DNA of 64,000 nt, taken from Takakia lepidozioides. Its lineage: Eukaryota; Plantae; Bryophyta. How positions within the stretch are numbered: the first letter of the stretch is position 1; the number at the start of each line of letters is the position of its first letter. Where the stretch lies: NCBI GenBank assembly GCA_030704615.1, contig CM060731.1, positions 42,656,001-42,720,000 on the forward strand, in the 5' to 3' direction. Below are positions 10,043 to 26,589 of the stretch, one piece after another. Both the position numbers and the translations under genes were made by a program. Below the pieces are notes generated by a model that saw only the letters and a list, made by a program, of their open reading frames with translations, was not told the DNA's origin and did not search any database.

Positions 10043-10483
10043 TTTCCATCTGGTTCACTGTAATTCCCTTTCGACTATTTTGAAAGCCGTGCCTATATCC
10101 TATCATCGGCCCACCACACTGTAAATATAAGTCTTAGAAACTTTGGGTTATTTGGAAGGATAGAGTTTGTATACTAGATAGCAGGATCTCTAGAAAAGAC
10201 AAGCTCATCCCTGTTGGTAAAAAAAAAAAAAAAAAAAAAGACAAGAATGCGAGTAGCAGAATGAAATTGTAGATGGAAAAGGACTGAATGTTGAGCGAGC
10301 ACCCTAGTATGCCAAGCCAGAAACAATATATTTTAAGACTGAGCCAAGCTGCGCTTTCACAAGTCGGATTGTGCGACAGGAATGTCCATCAACCGATGGA
10401 CAATATTTTGGTAATGAAGAGCTCCATTCCGAACTTGTATCTGTTTGCTTCCCCAAGAGAAAATGGAGAAACTTGAATTTTGC

Positions 10484-12210
10484 TTAAAGGAACGAGAAAA
10501 GGCTTTTGCAGCCCATATATTCATGTTGTCCAACAGGCGAGGGACTGACTGTGCTGGGACTTTCACATTCCAGTTTTTCTCCTTGCAACCTGCAACGGCC
10601 CAAATGATTAAGGCCAAGCACATAACTTAGTAGCTGCACCTCAATATCATGCTGAAAAAAGCTCATCATGAAGCCAATGGGTACGCACCGTCCGAAAAGG
10701 CTTTTGCGGCCCATGAATTCATGTCGTCCAGCAGGAGAGGGACTGACTGTGCTGGGACTTTCACATTCCAGTTTTTCTTCTTGCAACCTGCACTGGCCCA
10801 AATGAGTTAGGCCAAGCCAAGCACATGACTTAGTAGCTGCACCTCAATATCATGTTCCAACAATAAAAGAACGTAAAAAAAAGCTCATCATGAAGCCAAT
10901 GGGTACGCACCGTCCGAAAAGGCTTTTGCGGCCCATGAATTCATGCCGTCCAGCAGGAGAGGGACTGACTGTGCTGGGACTTTCACATTCCAATTTTTCT
11001 TCTTGCAACCTGCACTGGCCCAAATGAGTTAGGCCAAGCCAAGCACATGACTTAGTAGCTGCACCTCAATATCATGTTCCAACAATAAAAGAACGTAAAA
11101 AAAAGCTCATCATGAAGCCAATGGGTACGCACCGTCCGAAAAGGCTTTTGCGGCCCATGAATTCATGCCGTCCAGCAGGAGAGGGACTGACTGTGCTGGG
11201 ACTTTCACATTCCAATTTTTCTTCTTGCAACCTGCACTGGACCAAATGAGTTAGGCCAAGCCAAGCACATGACTTAGTAGCTGCACCTCAATATCACGCT
11301 CCAACAATAAAAGAAAGTAAAAAAAAGCTCATCATGAAGCCAATGGGTACGCACCGTCCGAAAAGGCTTTTGCGGCCCATGAATTCATGTCGTTCAGCAG
11401 GAGAGGGACTGACTGTGCTGGGACTTTCACATTCCAATTTTTCTTCTTGCAACCTGCACTCGCCCAAATGGGTTAGGCCAAGCCAAGCACATAACTTAGT
11501 AGCTGCACCTCAATATCATGCTCCAACAATAAAATAAAGTAAAAAAAAGCTCATCATGAAGCCAATGAGTACGCACCGTCCGAAAAGGCTTTTGCAGCCC
11601 ATAAATTCATGTCGTCCAGCAGGAGAGGGACTGACTGTGCTGGGACTTTCACATTCCAATTTTTCTTCTTGCAACCTGCACTGGCCCAAATGAATTAGGC
11701 CAAGCCAAGCACATGACTTAGTAGCTGCACCTGCACCTCAATATCATGCTCAACCAAAAAACAAGAAAAAAAGCTCAACATGAAGCCAATGAGTACGCAC
11801 CGACCAAAAAGGTTTTTGCAGCCCATAAATTCATGTTGTCCAACAGGAGAGGGACTGACTGTGTTGGGACTTCCCCATTCCAGTTTTTCTCCTTGCAACC
11901 TGCACCGGCCCAAATGAATTACGCTCCTGTTGGACGACATGAATTTATGGGCTGCAAAAGCCTTTTCGGTCGGTGCGTACTCATTGGCTTCCTGATGAGC
12001 TTTTCTTTTTTCTTTTCTTTTATTGTTGGAGCATGATATTGAGGTGCAGCTACCAAGTTGACTGTGTTGGGACTTCCCCATTCCTGTTTTTCTCCTTGCA
12101 ACCTGCACTGGCCCAAATGAATTATGCCAAGCACATAACTTGGTAGCTGCACCTCAATATCATGCTCATAAGAAAAAAACTCGTCATGAAGTCAATGAGT
12201 ACGCACCGAC
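10484..12210 (-). repeat. tandem array of ~222-bp intron+exon units downstream of the MER3 coding region (6 intact 99-nt exons, 1 inversion-disrupted copy, 1 terminal exon)
   Basis: Each minus-strand unit is a GTGCGT donor ... TGCAG acceptor plus a 99-nt exon. Exons at 11801-11899, 11577-11675, 11355-11453, 11133-11231, 10911-11009 and 10689-10787; terminal exon 10484-10589 ends MGCKSLFSFL*. Confidence 0.9.
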
Positions 12211-12231
12211 AGGGACTCTCATTTTCAGGAT

Positions 12232-15200
12232 TTAGAGTTTAAAGGTTCTGGTGCAGCAACACCTTGATGTGGTGGCCAGGGTGTCTCCAGGGGACTTCTT
12301 CAAGTCGTTTTGCAGAGAGGCATGAGTTGGATATGTCAAAAGCACTGCCAGAGATGTACGTCGGTGCTTCTTGAGGCATGGCATTGGTTGTTCTTCAGGC
12401 GCACTATCTTCATGGTGTGCAATTCTGGCATCTCTGCCCTGCAGCAGATGCCCAGGGGGAGGGCGGTTTGTGCACTTCAATGACTCCCACTGCGCCACTG
12501 GCTCCTCTGATGAATCAGGAAGACCCTTGCCAGCTCCAGACCGTGGACTGTCATAGACAAACATCTTGCAGAAGAGATCAACTGCAACTGCACCCATGCA
12601 GGAGTATTTTTCAAAATGCAATTACACAAGTCCAGTTTGACAACCTCTGCCTGCCCAGAAAGTACTTATTTTTATCGTAATGATAAACACAATGGACACA
12701 CCTGAACAATATACGGTAGTGCATCCTAATAAAACACACAGAAGGCGGCTTGAAAGTTGGGGGACAGACATACCATATTCATCAGAGATAAGAGCAGCAT
12801 TTATATCACAATGTTGTTCATTCGAAACTCGGGTGGCACAGATAGTGATGGTGTAAGGGCTGCACAGTTGGTTCAACTGCATTGTCAACACTAGCTCATG
12901 GGAAAACACGTTGGGTATTCTTAGATGTACAGTTCTATACTTGTCCTACTTTTGCCTACAAGCTGGCTAGTGTATTTCATGTTGTCAATGAGGTAGAATG
13001 AGCTCACCTGGAGAATTGATCCAACCTGTCAAGGACAGAGCACGGCAGAAGAAGCTTAGCACTTTGATCAAGGGCAGGTCATGACACAAAATCACAATTT
13101 CTGCTGGACCTTAATCCTAAAGCACAGTACCTGATTCTTTCATGATACAAAAGCCTGTTATCAGTCTCACTTCCCACCACCTGAACATGCCAACACAAAA
13201 CCAGGAGATACAGAGAACAGAATATAGAAGACTACGCCAGAAGCTGTGTGGGTTACATCAGTCATCAGACAGGTTCAGAAAACATCAAGAAAAGCCCTGG
13301 GACCACCTTTAAAAATACCTTCCCTCTGGCCTTCTAATTCCAGAAGATAGAGAGATCACAGTGTAAAAGATTACTCCAGATTTCTAGAAAGCCATGTGAA
13401 AATAAGCAGCTATGTCAGGCACCAGACAGGCTCAGGAAACATCTTCATGAACAAAAGAAAGGAAACAAGCCCCTTCATCATTGAAAGCACTTTCCCTCTA
13501 GCTTCCTCCTTTGTAGACATGTATTATGCATAGGTATACAAACACTACCAATGCATAAGGAGTACACACCAGGTCTGCCACATGCTTGCTGGATGGCTTT
13601 GACTGTGAATGTCGAGTGAGTGTGAGCCTTAAGTCATTCTTTCCATGAGACATCAGAAACAGCTTCATTTCAACTTTTGGTGGTAGCACATCCAAACCAT
13701 CTTTCACTTGATTTCCATATGGGTATTTGCGCCCCAAAATGGATTCCAGGCGCCGAGGATCAGCTACTGCTAATTTCTTGAAGGAGTCCACACCTGCCTT
13801 GAGCAAAGCCTGCACTGTGCATAGTTATAAGTTACTTGGAGTCCCAAGAACCAAAACCGTCTCTCTTAAATTGGAACGCAACTCTCCAAGAACACCCAGC
13901 TCCACTATGCTTTCAACGATAAGGCACCACGTACTAATTTCTACTTTTCTTTCTCCCACAACCTACGGATAGAGACTGGCAGATGGGAAAACCTGCAACG
14001 GGAGGACCGCCTATGTCCAGCTTGCATAGGGCGCAGCAAGGAAATTGAAACTGAAGAACACTTCTTCTTCTACTGCCCTCTATACTACGAGATCCGTGGG
14101 AGATTCCACTGTTTATTCAGTGGAACCCAAACTCTCACTGATGTCTTCCACTATGAGGATCAAAAATGCTTGGCAGCCTACCTACACGAGGCCTTCACCC
14201 TTAGACAATCGCTAGAACATTAATTGTGGTTTCTGGATTTGTTCCTCTCTCATGTTTTCTTACATTTTGTCCCATAAGCTCTATGAGCTTTCCGCGGACG
14301 TTATAAGCACCATTTCATTTCATTCATTTCATTTCTCCCATGCCTCTCTGTACCCCCTGTGGATGTTTTCTTCGTCTTCTGATGAAAAAGCATCACTGAA
14401 ATTAAAGCACCTTTGCAGTGACTGGGCCAATGCCAGGGAGCTGTTTTAGTTGGTAGCAAGTGCCCTCCCAGAGCCGCTGCTTGAGGCATTTAGACAACGT
14501 GAGAGCACACTGTGCCTCTCTGTATCTTTTCATGAATATGAAATACTCACTCACACAGCGACAAATCCGATTCCCACTTGTACAAATACCATTCACATCC
14601 TGTTGCAAGCAAATCAGTGGAGTATTACTGCAAGGTTGCAAGCATCATTGCATAATTGAGGTGGTGAGTGAAGTAAGTTGCAGTCTACCCTAATTCTATC
14701 AAAGGATGGGATATTATCAAATGGGCGTCTCAGGAACAGACTAAGAGTCCCCAAGATTGGGCTCACAGGTCTTGATAGCATCAGCAAGAGAAAGGAAAGG
14801 ATTGGGGATGGGTGGCTTATCTTGGGTTTGACTGCATACCTGGTTCATTGTAAAGTCCAGGGAGGACGGCTCTCCAGACAGTGCATCATTGACCAACACA
14901 AATATCTTCTCATGGTCTGTCTGAATCCGCTTCTTAATTTTTCCATTTGGCGCATTTACATGAAACCTGACTCTGCCACTGGTGTCATTGTTGATATCAT
15001 TCAGTCTCTTCTTCTCATCCCGGCGTAGCTTGATCCCTGTCCACATACAAGACCATCATTTCTAGAAGCATATCAGGCGATACCCCTGGATTCTCTGAAA
15101 AGTGAGGAAGGATTATCCATACATGATAGTTCATTTGCCGTTGACAAGACATGAAGAAGGTCCTCCAGTTTGCTCTTCTCAGGAACATTCGTTATTGATT

Positions 15201-24715: not shown

Positions 24716-26589
24716 ATGGCGCTTGCAAGGGGTGGTCAATACTTCGGTAGCATTGGCGAAAGGTATAATTCAAATTCTTCTCATGCAAAAATGCTTCTTC
24801 GGAAGTAACTAGAGCTTTCAGGTGCATCTGGTCTTGATAGTCGGCAGCTAAAAGTATTGAGTCATGCAGGGTAGAAGAATTGCAACACGCTGCGGGGCAT
24901 CACACTGGCAGTAGGAGGAGCACTTCGTCCATCGTCATTGCTTTTGGAAGAGGGACAAGAGAAGGAATAAACAAGAGCTCTTCTTGCACTCATTGGGATG
25001 TGAGGGCACTATGTAAGAAGGGACGACTGAAAGAGGCGCTGCACATGTTGAGCCAACATGACATTCAGGCCGACTCCGATACTTATATCTGTGTCTTGCG
25101 GGAGTGCATCAACGTGAAAGGCCTAGCAGAGGGAAAGCAGGTGCATGCCCACATTGTGCAAAGTAGATTGAAGCCAAACTACTCTCTACTCAACACCCTT
25201 GTCAACATGTATGCCAAATGCGGGAGCTTGGGGGATGCACGCCAAGTGTTTGACAAAATGCCTGAACGAGATGTGTTTACTTGGACCGCAATGATAGCAG
25301 GATATGCCAATCATGGGTGTGGTATGGAGGCTTTCAGGATCTATCAGCAAATGCAACGGGAAGGGGTAAAACCAAACAATGTCACGTTCATTTGCATTCT
25401 CAAGGCGTGTGCCAGCCTAGGAGCTGTAGAAAAGGGCAGACAAGTCCATGCTGACCTCATCAAAGCTGGAATTGCGATGGATATCATTCTGGAGACTGCC
25501 CTTACTGACATGTACGCCAAATGTGGAAGCCTAAGGGATGCACGGCAAGTGTTTGATGATATGGCTCACCGAAATGTGGTCTCATGGAATGCAATAATCA
25601 CAGGGTATGCTCAACACGGGTGTGGTAGAGAGGCGTTGGAGGTGTATGAACAAATGAAAGGGGAGGGGGTGATCTCTGACAAGGTCACCTTCATGTGCGT
25701 TCTCCATGCGTGCTCCAGCCTAGGAAACCTGGAAAAGGGGAAAGTGGTCCATGCTGACATCATGAAATCTGGATTACCGTCACACATAAAGTTGGAGAAT
25801 GCCCTTGTCAATATGTATGCCAAATGCGGGAGCATGAATGATGCACGTCAAGTGTTTGACAATATGGCTCAAAAAAATGTGGTCTCATGGTCCACTATGA
25901 TTGCAGGATGTGCTCGGCATGGCTGTGGTAGGGAGGCTTTGGAGGCGTATGAGCAAATGATAGAGGGAGGGGTGACCCCAGACAAGGTCACATTCATTTC
26001 TCTTCTCAATGCGTGTGCCAGCCTGGCAGCCCTGGAAAAAGGCAAAGAGGTGCATGCTGACATCATCACGGCTGGAATTGAGCAAGATATCATTCTGGAG
26101 ACTGCCCTCGTTGACATGTATGCTAAAAGTGGCAACATGAACAATGCATGTCAAGTGTTTGACAATATGGTTCACCGAGATGTGGTTTCATGGAGCTCGA
26201 TGATTGCAGGATATGCTCAGCATGGGTGTGGTGGGGAGGCCCTGCAACTGTTTGAACGAATGCAGCAGGAAGGGTTGAAGCCAGACGGTTTCACCTTCAT
26301 GTCTCTTCTCTCTGCATGTAGCAATGTGGGCTTAGTGGATGAAGGTTGCCACTACTTTGATTCCATGAGTCGAGATCATGGCTTCACTCCTAAAGTGGAA
26401 CATTTTGGCTGCATTGTCGACCTTCTTGGCCGTGCAGGGCGGTTGGATGAGGCAGAGGACATCATTTACAAAATGCCACTTGAACCAGGTGCTGCGGTGT
26501 GGAGGGCCCTGCTTGGTGCCTGCAGGATGCATGGCAATTTGGAGGTAGCAGAACGTGCGGCAAAATGTCTTCTCAAGTGGGATCCATAG
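24716..26589 (+). CDS. PLS-class PPR protein (14 motifs + E1, no E2/DYW), probable organellar RNA-binding/editing factor
   Basis: Uninterrupted ORF 24870-26589 with L-S-(P-L-S)3-P2-L2-S2-E1. The ORF-track start is TTG; a phase-compatible first exon 24716-24762 (MALARGGQYFGSIGER, GTATAA donor) spliced to the TGCAG acceptor at 24869 supplies an ATG (first exon inferred). Confidence 0.85.

Follow-up and report, generated by a model that had tools for sequence, protein, structure and literature searches.

A young tandem array at the 3' end of the Takakia MER3 gene is spliced as in-phase cassette exons that may extend the protein

In this study, we have analysed a stretch of 64,000 nucleotides from Takakia lepidozioides (contig CM060731.1; hereafter the window), in which the 3' end of the MER3 gene carries a tandem array of an intron-plus-exon segment. 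The array is real, it is transcribed together with MER3 and it is spliced at the predicted sites. On balance, we favour the explanation that a young tandem amplification of a MER3 intron-exon segment has produced in-frame cassette exons, which could be translated from a donor at position 12262. MER3, or RCK (AT3G27730 in Arabidopsis; HFM1 in mammals), is a ZMM crossover helicase. It is one of the core ZMM proteins, is normally single-copy and structurally conservative, and sets the number of class I crossovers.

The gene was identified from exons that were searched singly, with the reading frames carried across by phase arithmetic. In Pfam searches, the DEAD domain (PF00270) scored 29.4 and 33.2 bits on two minus-strand exon ORFs (cutoff 26), and the Sec63 domain (PF02889) scored 22.9 bits on a single exon (cutoff 25). 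Using the Sec63-region exon as query, we retrieved 73 MER3-like proteins (best E = 7.5e-23). When MER3-like proteins were aligned to the window by tblastn, P0011, P0021 and P0016 were collinear with positions 20890-13130 with no visible disruption, P0011 being aligned collinearly over its residues 2-807. When the array ORF, the exon-24 ORF or the Sec63 exon was the query of a word search, which covered proteins of 0.55-1.75x the query length, no similar protein was returned, and a metagenome scan with the array ORF gave 140 pattern matches of which 0 were confirmed. The features shared with plant MER3/RCK are the DExH helicase core, a putative Sec63 domain (below the Pfam cutoff), the exon-by-exon collinearity and a ...FxGxxSxFSFL end. 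We also noted an 18-nt micro-exon at 13008-13025 (minus strand; ...LDQFS...), which matches RLEQFSSPY of P0021 and is required for the MER3 frame between the exons at 13180-13131 and 12859-12774.

The entire structure occupies 12210-10484 on the minus strand, at the MER3 3' end. Tandem Repeats Finder (TRF) reported one array, at 10655-11921 (period 222, 5.7 copies, 95% matches, score 2193), and the 64-kb window holds no further copy of the 222-bp repeat. By pattern scan of the minus strand, GTGCGT donors start at 12206, 11800, 11576, 11354, 11132, 10910 and 10688, and TGCAG acceptors end at 12103, 11900, 11676, 11454, 11232, 11010, 10788 and 10590; together they delimit six segments of 99 nt each, plus a terminal segment at 10589-10484. 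The TRF array, the splice-site scan and the alignment all agree with the initial annotation, which had described it as a splice cassette, intron plus exon, amplified at the 3' end of MER3. In one frame, every 99-nt segment encodes a 33-aa peptide with three S-P sites, and the peptide that had been quoted is correct. The six 99-nt phase-2/2 exons are likewise present as described, whereas the argument drawn from their freedom from stops does not hold: two of the three reading frames are open in every copy, and since the second frame is also open in all of them, this property is weak evidence for coding.

Reading along the minus strand, the first 56 nt of what is probably the ancestral last intron (12207-12262) lie directly behind the penultimate exon, and the DNA run X1 is identical to the window over this piece. 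Unit 0 (12104-12206), which would be the remainder of that intron, begins with the cryptic GTGCGT and ends with a TGCAG acceptor (pattern scan, alignment A1). It is followed by a truncated, 44-nt first copy of the last exon (12060-12103, minus strand; translation, alignment), broken by an inverted partial unit on the plus strand (11924-12059; inverted repeats I1-I15) that comprises the second half of the exon, the donor and the first half of the intron. These last two elements were missing from the initial annotation. The six cassette exons are all on the minus strand and were delimited by the pattern scan. U1 (11801-11899), placed also by alignment, is an older, diverged copy of 99 nt with ~22 nt of intron sequence upstream, and its donor and 3' half lie within a hairpin. 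The next four, also of 99 nt, are U2 (11577-11675, phase 2/2), U3 (11355-11453), U4 (11133-11231) and U5 (10911-11009), U4 and U5 being identical in the copy comparison. U6 (10689-10787, 99 nt; also by alignment) precedes a shortened 99-nt intron (10688-10590). The terminal coding exon (10484-10589, minus strand), identified by translation and homology, ends ...MGCKSLFSFL with the stop TAA at 10486-10484; its translation ends ...EYMGCKSLFSFL. Copies U2-U6 are near-identical, and the outer copies (U0, U1 and the terminal one) are the most diverged. Behind the stop, the 3'UTR (10228-10483, minus strand) is transcribed at least to a T-run at 10250-10228, as an RNA contig covers 10251-10568 and 23 further letters at depth 7.6. 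Every contig breaks at this run of ~23 T.

In the pre-mRNA, the inverted unit could base-pair with U1, and the 336 nt at 11740-12075 fold to -180 kcal/mol (z = -18), with near-perfect arms of ~135 nt. In the folding model, the hairpin would bury the U1 donor and half of U1, which fits the absence of RNA over U0 and U1. It may also bring the exon-24 donors near the U2 acceptor. Other conceivable effects are that it could mask the U1 donor or serve as a Dicer substrate, from which small RNAs against the MER3 tail exons could arise.

For the expression evidence, contigs of sequencing runs were aligned to the window; the best-supported joints are listed for each run, and isoform proportions are not derivable from such contigs. 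X1 is a DNA run, X5 is cDNA-like RNA from another accession, which differs from the window by ~1% SNPs, and X6 is an independent plant metagenome. In X5, introns 12588-12773 and 13809-14409 are removed, and X1 is contiguous over 12138-13975. Two X5 joints fall in the array: '11673->11575 goes back 99', at U2, joins a repeat exon to a repeat exon, and 10587->11353 links the end of a repeat exon with the terminal exon, its ends being CT..AC (on the minus strand GT..AG, cut +2). In the DNA run X1, these cassette joints are absent. The proposed splice sites are thus used in RNA, as the exon-exon joints attest. X5 depth is 7.6 over the terminal exon and 3'UTR and 4.7-15 over the MER3 exons, and its values in the bins holding U3 (11279-11475) and U5 suggest U3- and U4/U5-specific words. 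X5 has no coverage of 12204-11774, that is, of unit 0, the inverted segment with the truncated exon copy, and U1. Several introns are retained in X5, namely 11773-11676 (upstream of U2; contig 11647-11773), ~12937-12860 and ~13569-13495, the latter two being parts that flank the 18-nt micro-exon. Some of the MER3 RNA in X5 is therefore immature, and its joints need not mirror those of meiotic mRNA.

Array words occur in X6 as well. Since the array is found there too, and since X5 carries its own ~1% SNPs, the array is not an assembly artefact. We considered a 'variant' contig of X1 and X6 at 11505-11609 (6 changes + AAA) as an extra unit and rejected it, as it is the inverted copy, misplaced because 11994-12028 was masked. 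An estimate of array copy number from read depth was ruled out, repeat words being collapsed in contigs.

The terminal exon can be compared with other MER3 sequences. Among the longer library representatives, at least 10 end in FSFL, with ...S(F/Y)LG(F/C)xSVFSFL or a close variant (alignment A2), and P0021 and P0055 have the FSFL motif just before the protein ends. The Arabidopsis MER3 sequence ends ...SFLGFKSIFSFL (PMC9957857). Three bryophyte-like loci, taken from an ENA assembly contig (L002), a Logan contig (L005) and a JGI metagenome contig (L009), have a single last exon each, of 31-33 codons, that ends ...PSPAGQQ(E/Q)FMGYKSLFSFL + stop and shows many synonymous differences from that of the window. 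The FSFL-type ending that had been given for plant MER3 is therefore confirmed in orthologues, from the library representatives and Arabidopsis to the three bryophyte-like loci. Because the ending of the terminal exon is the conserved plant MER3 C-terminus, the SP-rich frame is, judged by homology, the old, ancestral coding frame. TRF detected no tandem array in L002 or L005, and reading through L009 showed none either; from this comparison, the array is to be seen as a lineage-specific amplification. In a review of the subject, we found no description of the function of the ...SVFSFL motif. Also of note is the tail that separates the Sec63 region from the last exon: here it is one exon of 108 codons (12587-12263), and in other bryophyte loci (e.g. 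L002, 11190-13862) it is made of several exons and several hundred codons, for which reason the MER3 tail appears much shortened in the Takakia lineage.

Comparison among the copies gives no signal of purifying selection, the changes being few, the copies young and concerted evolution a confounding factor. The variable exon columns (n = 14) are distributed over codon positions 1/2/3 of the SP frame as 2/8/4, and among U2-U5 the variable columns are about equal in exon (4/99) and intron (9/123). As for the S-P sites, they read SPST, SPSP and SPAG, with K/R at +3 in 0/3; they are minimal S-P sites only and the repeat contains no full CDK consensus, (S/T)-P-x-(K/R). As regards the full consensus, the suggestion of a possibly CDK-phosphorylated tail is not supported. 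The relatives L002, L005 and L009 keep one S-P site, PSPAG.

How the cassettes could be read depends on the end of the penultimate coding exon ('exon 24', 325 nt, 12263-12587, minus strand). An X5 contig joins 12774 to 12587, and the reading over this joint, ...LISDEY-V-AVDLF..., matches ...LISEEYVGVDV... of P0021 (DEYVAVDL vs EEYVGVDV). The match with P0021 across the RNA joint fixes the exon-24 frame, which is open over 107 codons up to AAG/GT at 12263/12262 (GT at 12262-12261), where two bases are left over (phase 2), and AG from 12263 with the G of any array exon makes an Arg codon. If it is continued past this point, the same frame stops at the TAA at 12234-12232, 25 nt before the 12206 donor, as had been noted. 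The last intron in L002, L005 and L009 is also of phase 2, with a split Arg codon (AG/A). Since this phase-2 split-Arg intron is common to the three loci, 12263/12262 is probably the authentic exon-24 donor. The initial annotation had named this AG/GTGTTG donor, as a weak one, and given its phase correctly; of the two in-frame routes that it offered, this is the one that comparison with the relatives favours. Homology of the penultimate exon end to the relatives is weak (z = 1.8 vs shuffles, p = 0.06): with the last 26 residues anchored at the end, the frame to 12263 has 6/26 identities vs L002 and 5/26 vs L005, and the frame ending at 12206 has 0/26 vs either.

The GTGCGT at 12206, by the same comparison, is probably a cryptic GT that lies 56 nt into the old intron, and not the ancestral exon-24 donor. 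The donors of the array probably descend from it. It differs from the array donors used in RNA at -3 only and matches the U1 donor exactly. Read in this manner, the sequence suggests that nothing is broken in exon 24, the ancestral last intron taking in the TAA (12234-12232) as well as the GTGCGT (12206). The initial annotation had instead proposed an ancestral frame lacking a 5-bp duplication (12375-12384) and the TAA. The duplication, ATGCC ATGCC, does exist in the window and, without indels, in X5 RNA of the second accession, but the frame stays open through 12375-12384 to 12262 and the 12206 frame has 0/26 identities, so that such an ancestral frame is unnecessary and the duplication need not be a lesion. 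We also rejected a single frameshift near 12230-12234 (TFKL then PENES, similar to PTFNLFPENE of P0027 and P0021), as the resemblance is short and the motif lies elsewhere in those proteins.

Based on these results, a possible history can be outlined. In a young event, a segment of ~200-222 bp, made of the 3' 103 nt of the MER3 last intron and the first ~95 nt of the last coding exon, would have been copied seven times in direct and once, partially, in inverted orientation. Here the duplication unit proposed in the initial annotation, the last intron with most of the last exon, is retained for its exon part and amended for its start, which at ~12210 lies inside the ancestral intron and not at its beginning. 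Each internal copy would inherit the branch site and the TGCAG acceptor of the old intron, and would gain a donor from a formerly silent intronic GTGCGT, 4-5 nt past the duplication junction. Starting from 12263/12262 in phase 2, the frame would remain open however many cassettes are included, as far as the conserved ...KSLFSFL stop, each cassette lengthening the disordered MER3 tail by 33 aa that include most of the conserved C-terminal motif. As an alternative outcome, use of the cryptic GT at 12206 would add 56 nt behind exon 24 with an in-frame TAA, 25 nt before the first junction and at least 124 nt before the next. This would give a truncated isoform, prone to nonsense-mediated decay (NMD), that competes with the productive one.

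The evidence on donor choice in X5 bears on this second outcome. X5 covers the exon-24 end with a single piece, 12268-12205 (depth 6), which continues past the 12262 donor and then the TAA (12234-12232), and breaks off exactly at the expected end of a splice from the 12206 donor (GT shared with the exon start). Judging by this piece, which passes both and stops at 12205, there is probably an unproductive isoform in which several junctions come after a premature stop. Among the X5 joints listed, none leaves from 12263 (donor 12262). One could accordingly propose that the cassettes are spliced and never translated: the 12206 donor would be used, MER3 would end at the TAA at 12234-12232 without its C-terminal motif, the cassettes would be 3'UTR exons whose junctions, more than 55 nt past the stop, mark the RNA for NMD, and the array would either be a structural variant, neutral or slightly deleterious, or hold expression down. 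The course of the X5 piece past the in-frame donor and stop to the cryptic donor is what such a proposal predicts, and the near identity of the 12206 donor to the used array donors (at all but -3) and to that of U1, as well as the lack of coding constraint among the copies, are in keeping with it. The terminal exon, however, retains an intact motif and stop at the orthologous place, the remainder of the MER3 gene is intact, the in-phase and orthologous-looking 12262 donor is preserved, and the X5 RNA is partly immature. We regard the untranslated array as possible but rather unlikely.

The explanation that we favour, translation of the cassettes from the 12262 donor, may be carried further, in a form that we put forward only tentatively and consider unlikely as a whole. 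The protein would then carry up to six extra copies of the C-terminal peptide (...EFMGRKSLF...) as a multivalent, S-P-rich, partner-binding tail, the length of which would depend on how many cassettes are included and on unequal crossing-over among accessions; the competing donors at 12262 and 12206 and the intronic hairpin (-180 kcal/mol) would together switch the helicase on or off, through NMD, outside meiosis.

It could also be that cassette inclusion is splicing noise, meiotic mRNA joining 12263 to the 10590 acceptor to give the ancestral protein, with the array as nothing other than a last intron expanded to 1.7 kb. The single last exon of the relatives would agree with this, as would the missing selection signal among the copies and the missing RNA coverage of U0 and U1. 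We find it doubtful, more so than the untranslated array, as the cassette-cassette and cassette-terminal joints of X5 have depths at or above the MER3 exon depth, the bin depths suggest U3- and U4/U5-specific words, and, with introns of 99-125 nt, pairing with the nearest acceptor would be expected to include cassettes. Finally, tandem repeats misassemble easily and the two open frames are at chance-level odds, but it is highly improbable that the array was misassembled, or that it is a satellite or transposon without relation to MER3 that mimics exons, given the array contigs in X1 DNA, in X5 RNA with its ~1% SNPs and in X6, the homology of the exon part to the last MER3 exon in other bryophytes, and a window with no second copy.

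Tandem exon duplication that gives rise to alternative or cassette exons has been reviewed (PMC9013439) and is documented in human genes (PMC8373072, PMC9741552). The MER3 cassette exons are homologous to each other, have their own acceptor and donor each, are 99 nt long and of phase 2/2, and are in the exon-24 frame from 12263/12262. As in the known cases, an exon has been tandemly copied with flanking intron, its splice sites are kept, its length is divisible by three and RNA secondary structure is possibly involved, the inverted copy forming a hairpin in the MER3 array. Unlike the members of a mutually exclusive exon cluster, the MER3 copies are joined together in RNA (the '11673->11575 goes back 99' joint). 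The MER3 array also departs from the known tandem exon duplications in that a last coding exon was duplicated, cut off ahead of its stop codon, in that the donor of the array would be a recruited intronic GT and not a copied true donor, and in that the copies, 95-100% identical, are very young and three relatives lack them. When compared with the MER3 sequences considered here, the Takakia gene differs in its much shorter tail from Sec63 to the motif and in a C-terminal exon that, among these sequences, is amplified in it alone. A further parallel is NMD-coupled unproductive splicing, in which use of an alternative donor (56 nt downstream in this gene) includes an in-frame stop, with up to seven exon junctions after it; in contrast to the known examples, the competing donor would be a by-product of the very sequence that was amplified, and the NMD sensitivity is putative. 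The MER3 array is, in sum, a new instance of a known process and not a new kind of system. What is unusual is that the exon concerned is the terminal coding one, in a meiotic helicase that is otherwise conservative, that an intronic GT appears to have been recruited as donor, and that there is RNA support.

Importantly, conservation of the ...SVFSFL motif extends from mosses to Arabidopsis. A natural allele in which this motif may be present in up to seven copies, or be lost when a competing donor is used, could offer a handle on its role. The array would also show, cleanly and at a very early stage, how in-frame cassette exons can arise when a tandemly duplicated intron-exon fragment takes up a silent intronic GT as donor. 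Should the cassettes not be translated, it would be an ordinary structural variant in a 3' region.

Two further observations concern the surroundings of the array. Inside a MER3 intron, the stretch at 13840-14430 has word depths of thousands to hundreds of thousands in 4/4 runs, with many variants and joints, and is a very high-copy repeat, either a transposon fragment or a satellite. On the promoter side of MER3, and diverging from it, lies an intronless ORF of 569 aa (24880-26589, plus strand) for a pentatricopeptide repeat protein (PPR_2, 8.7e-80), which by eye is of the PLS type.
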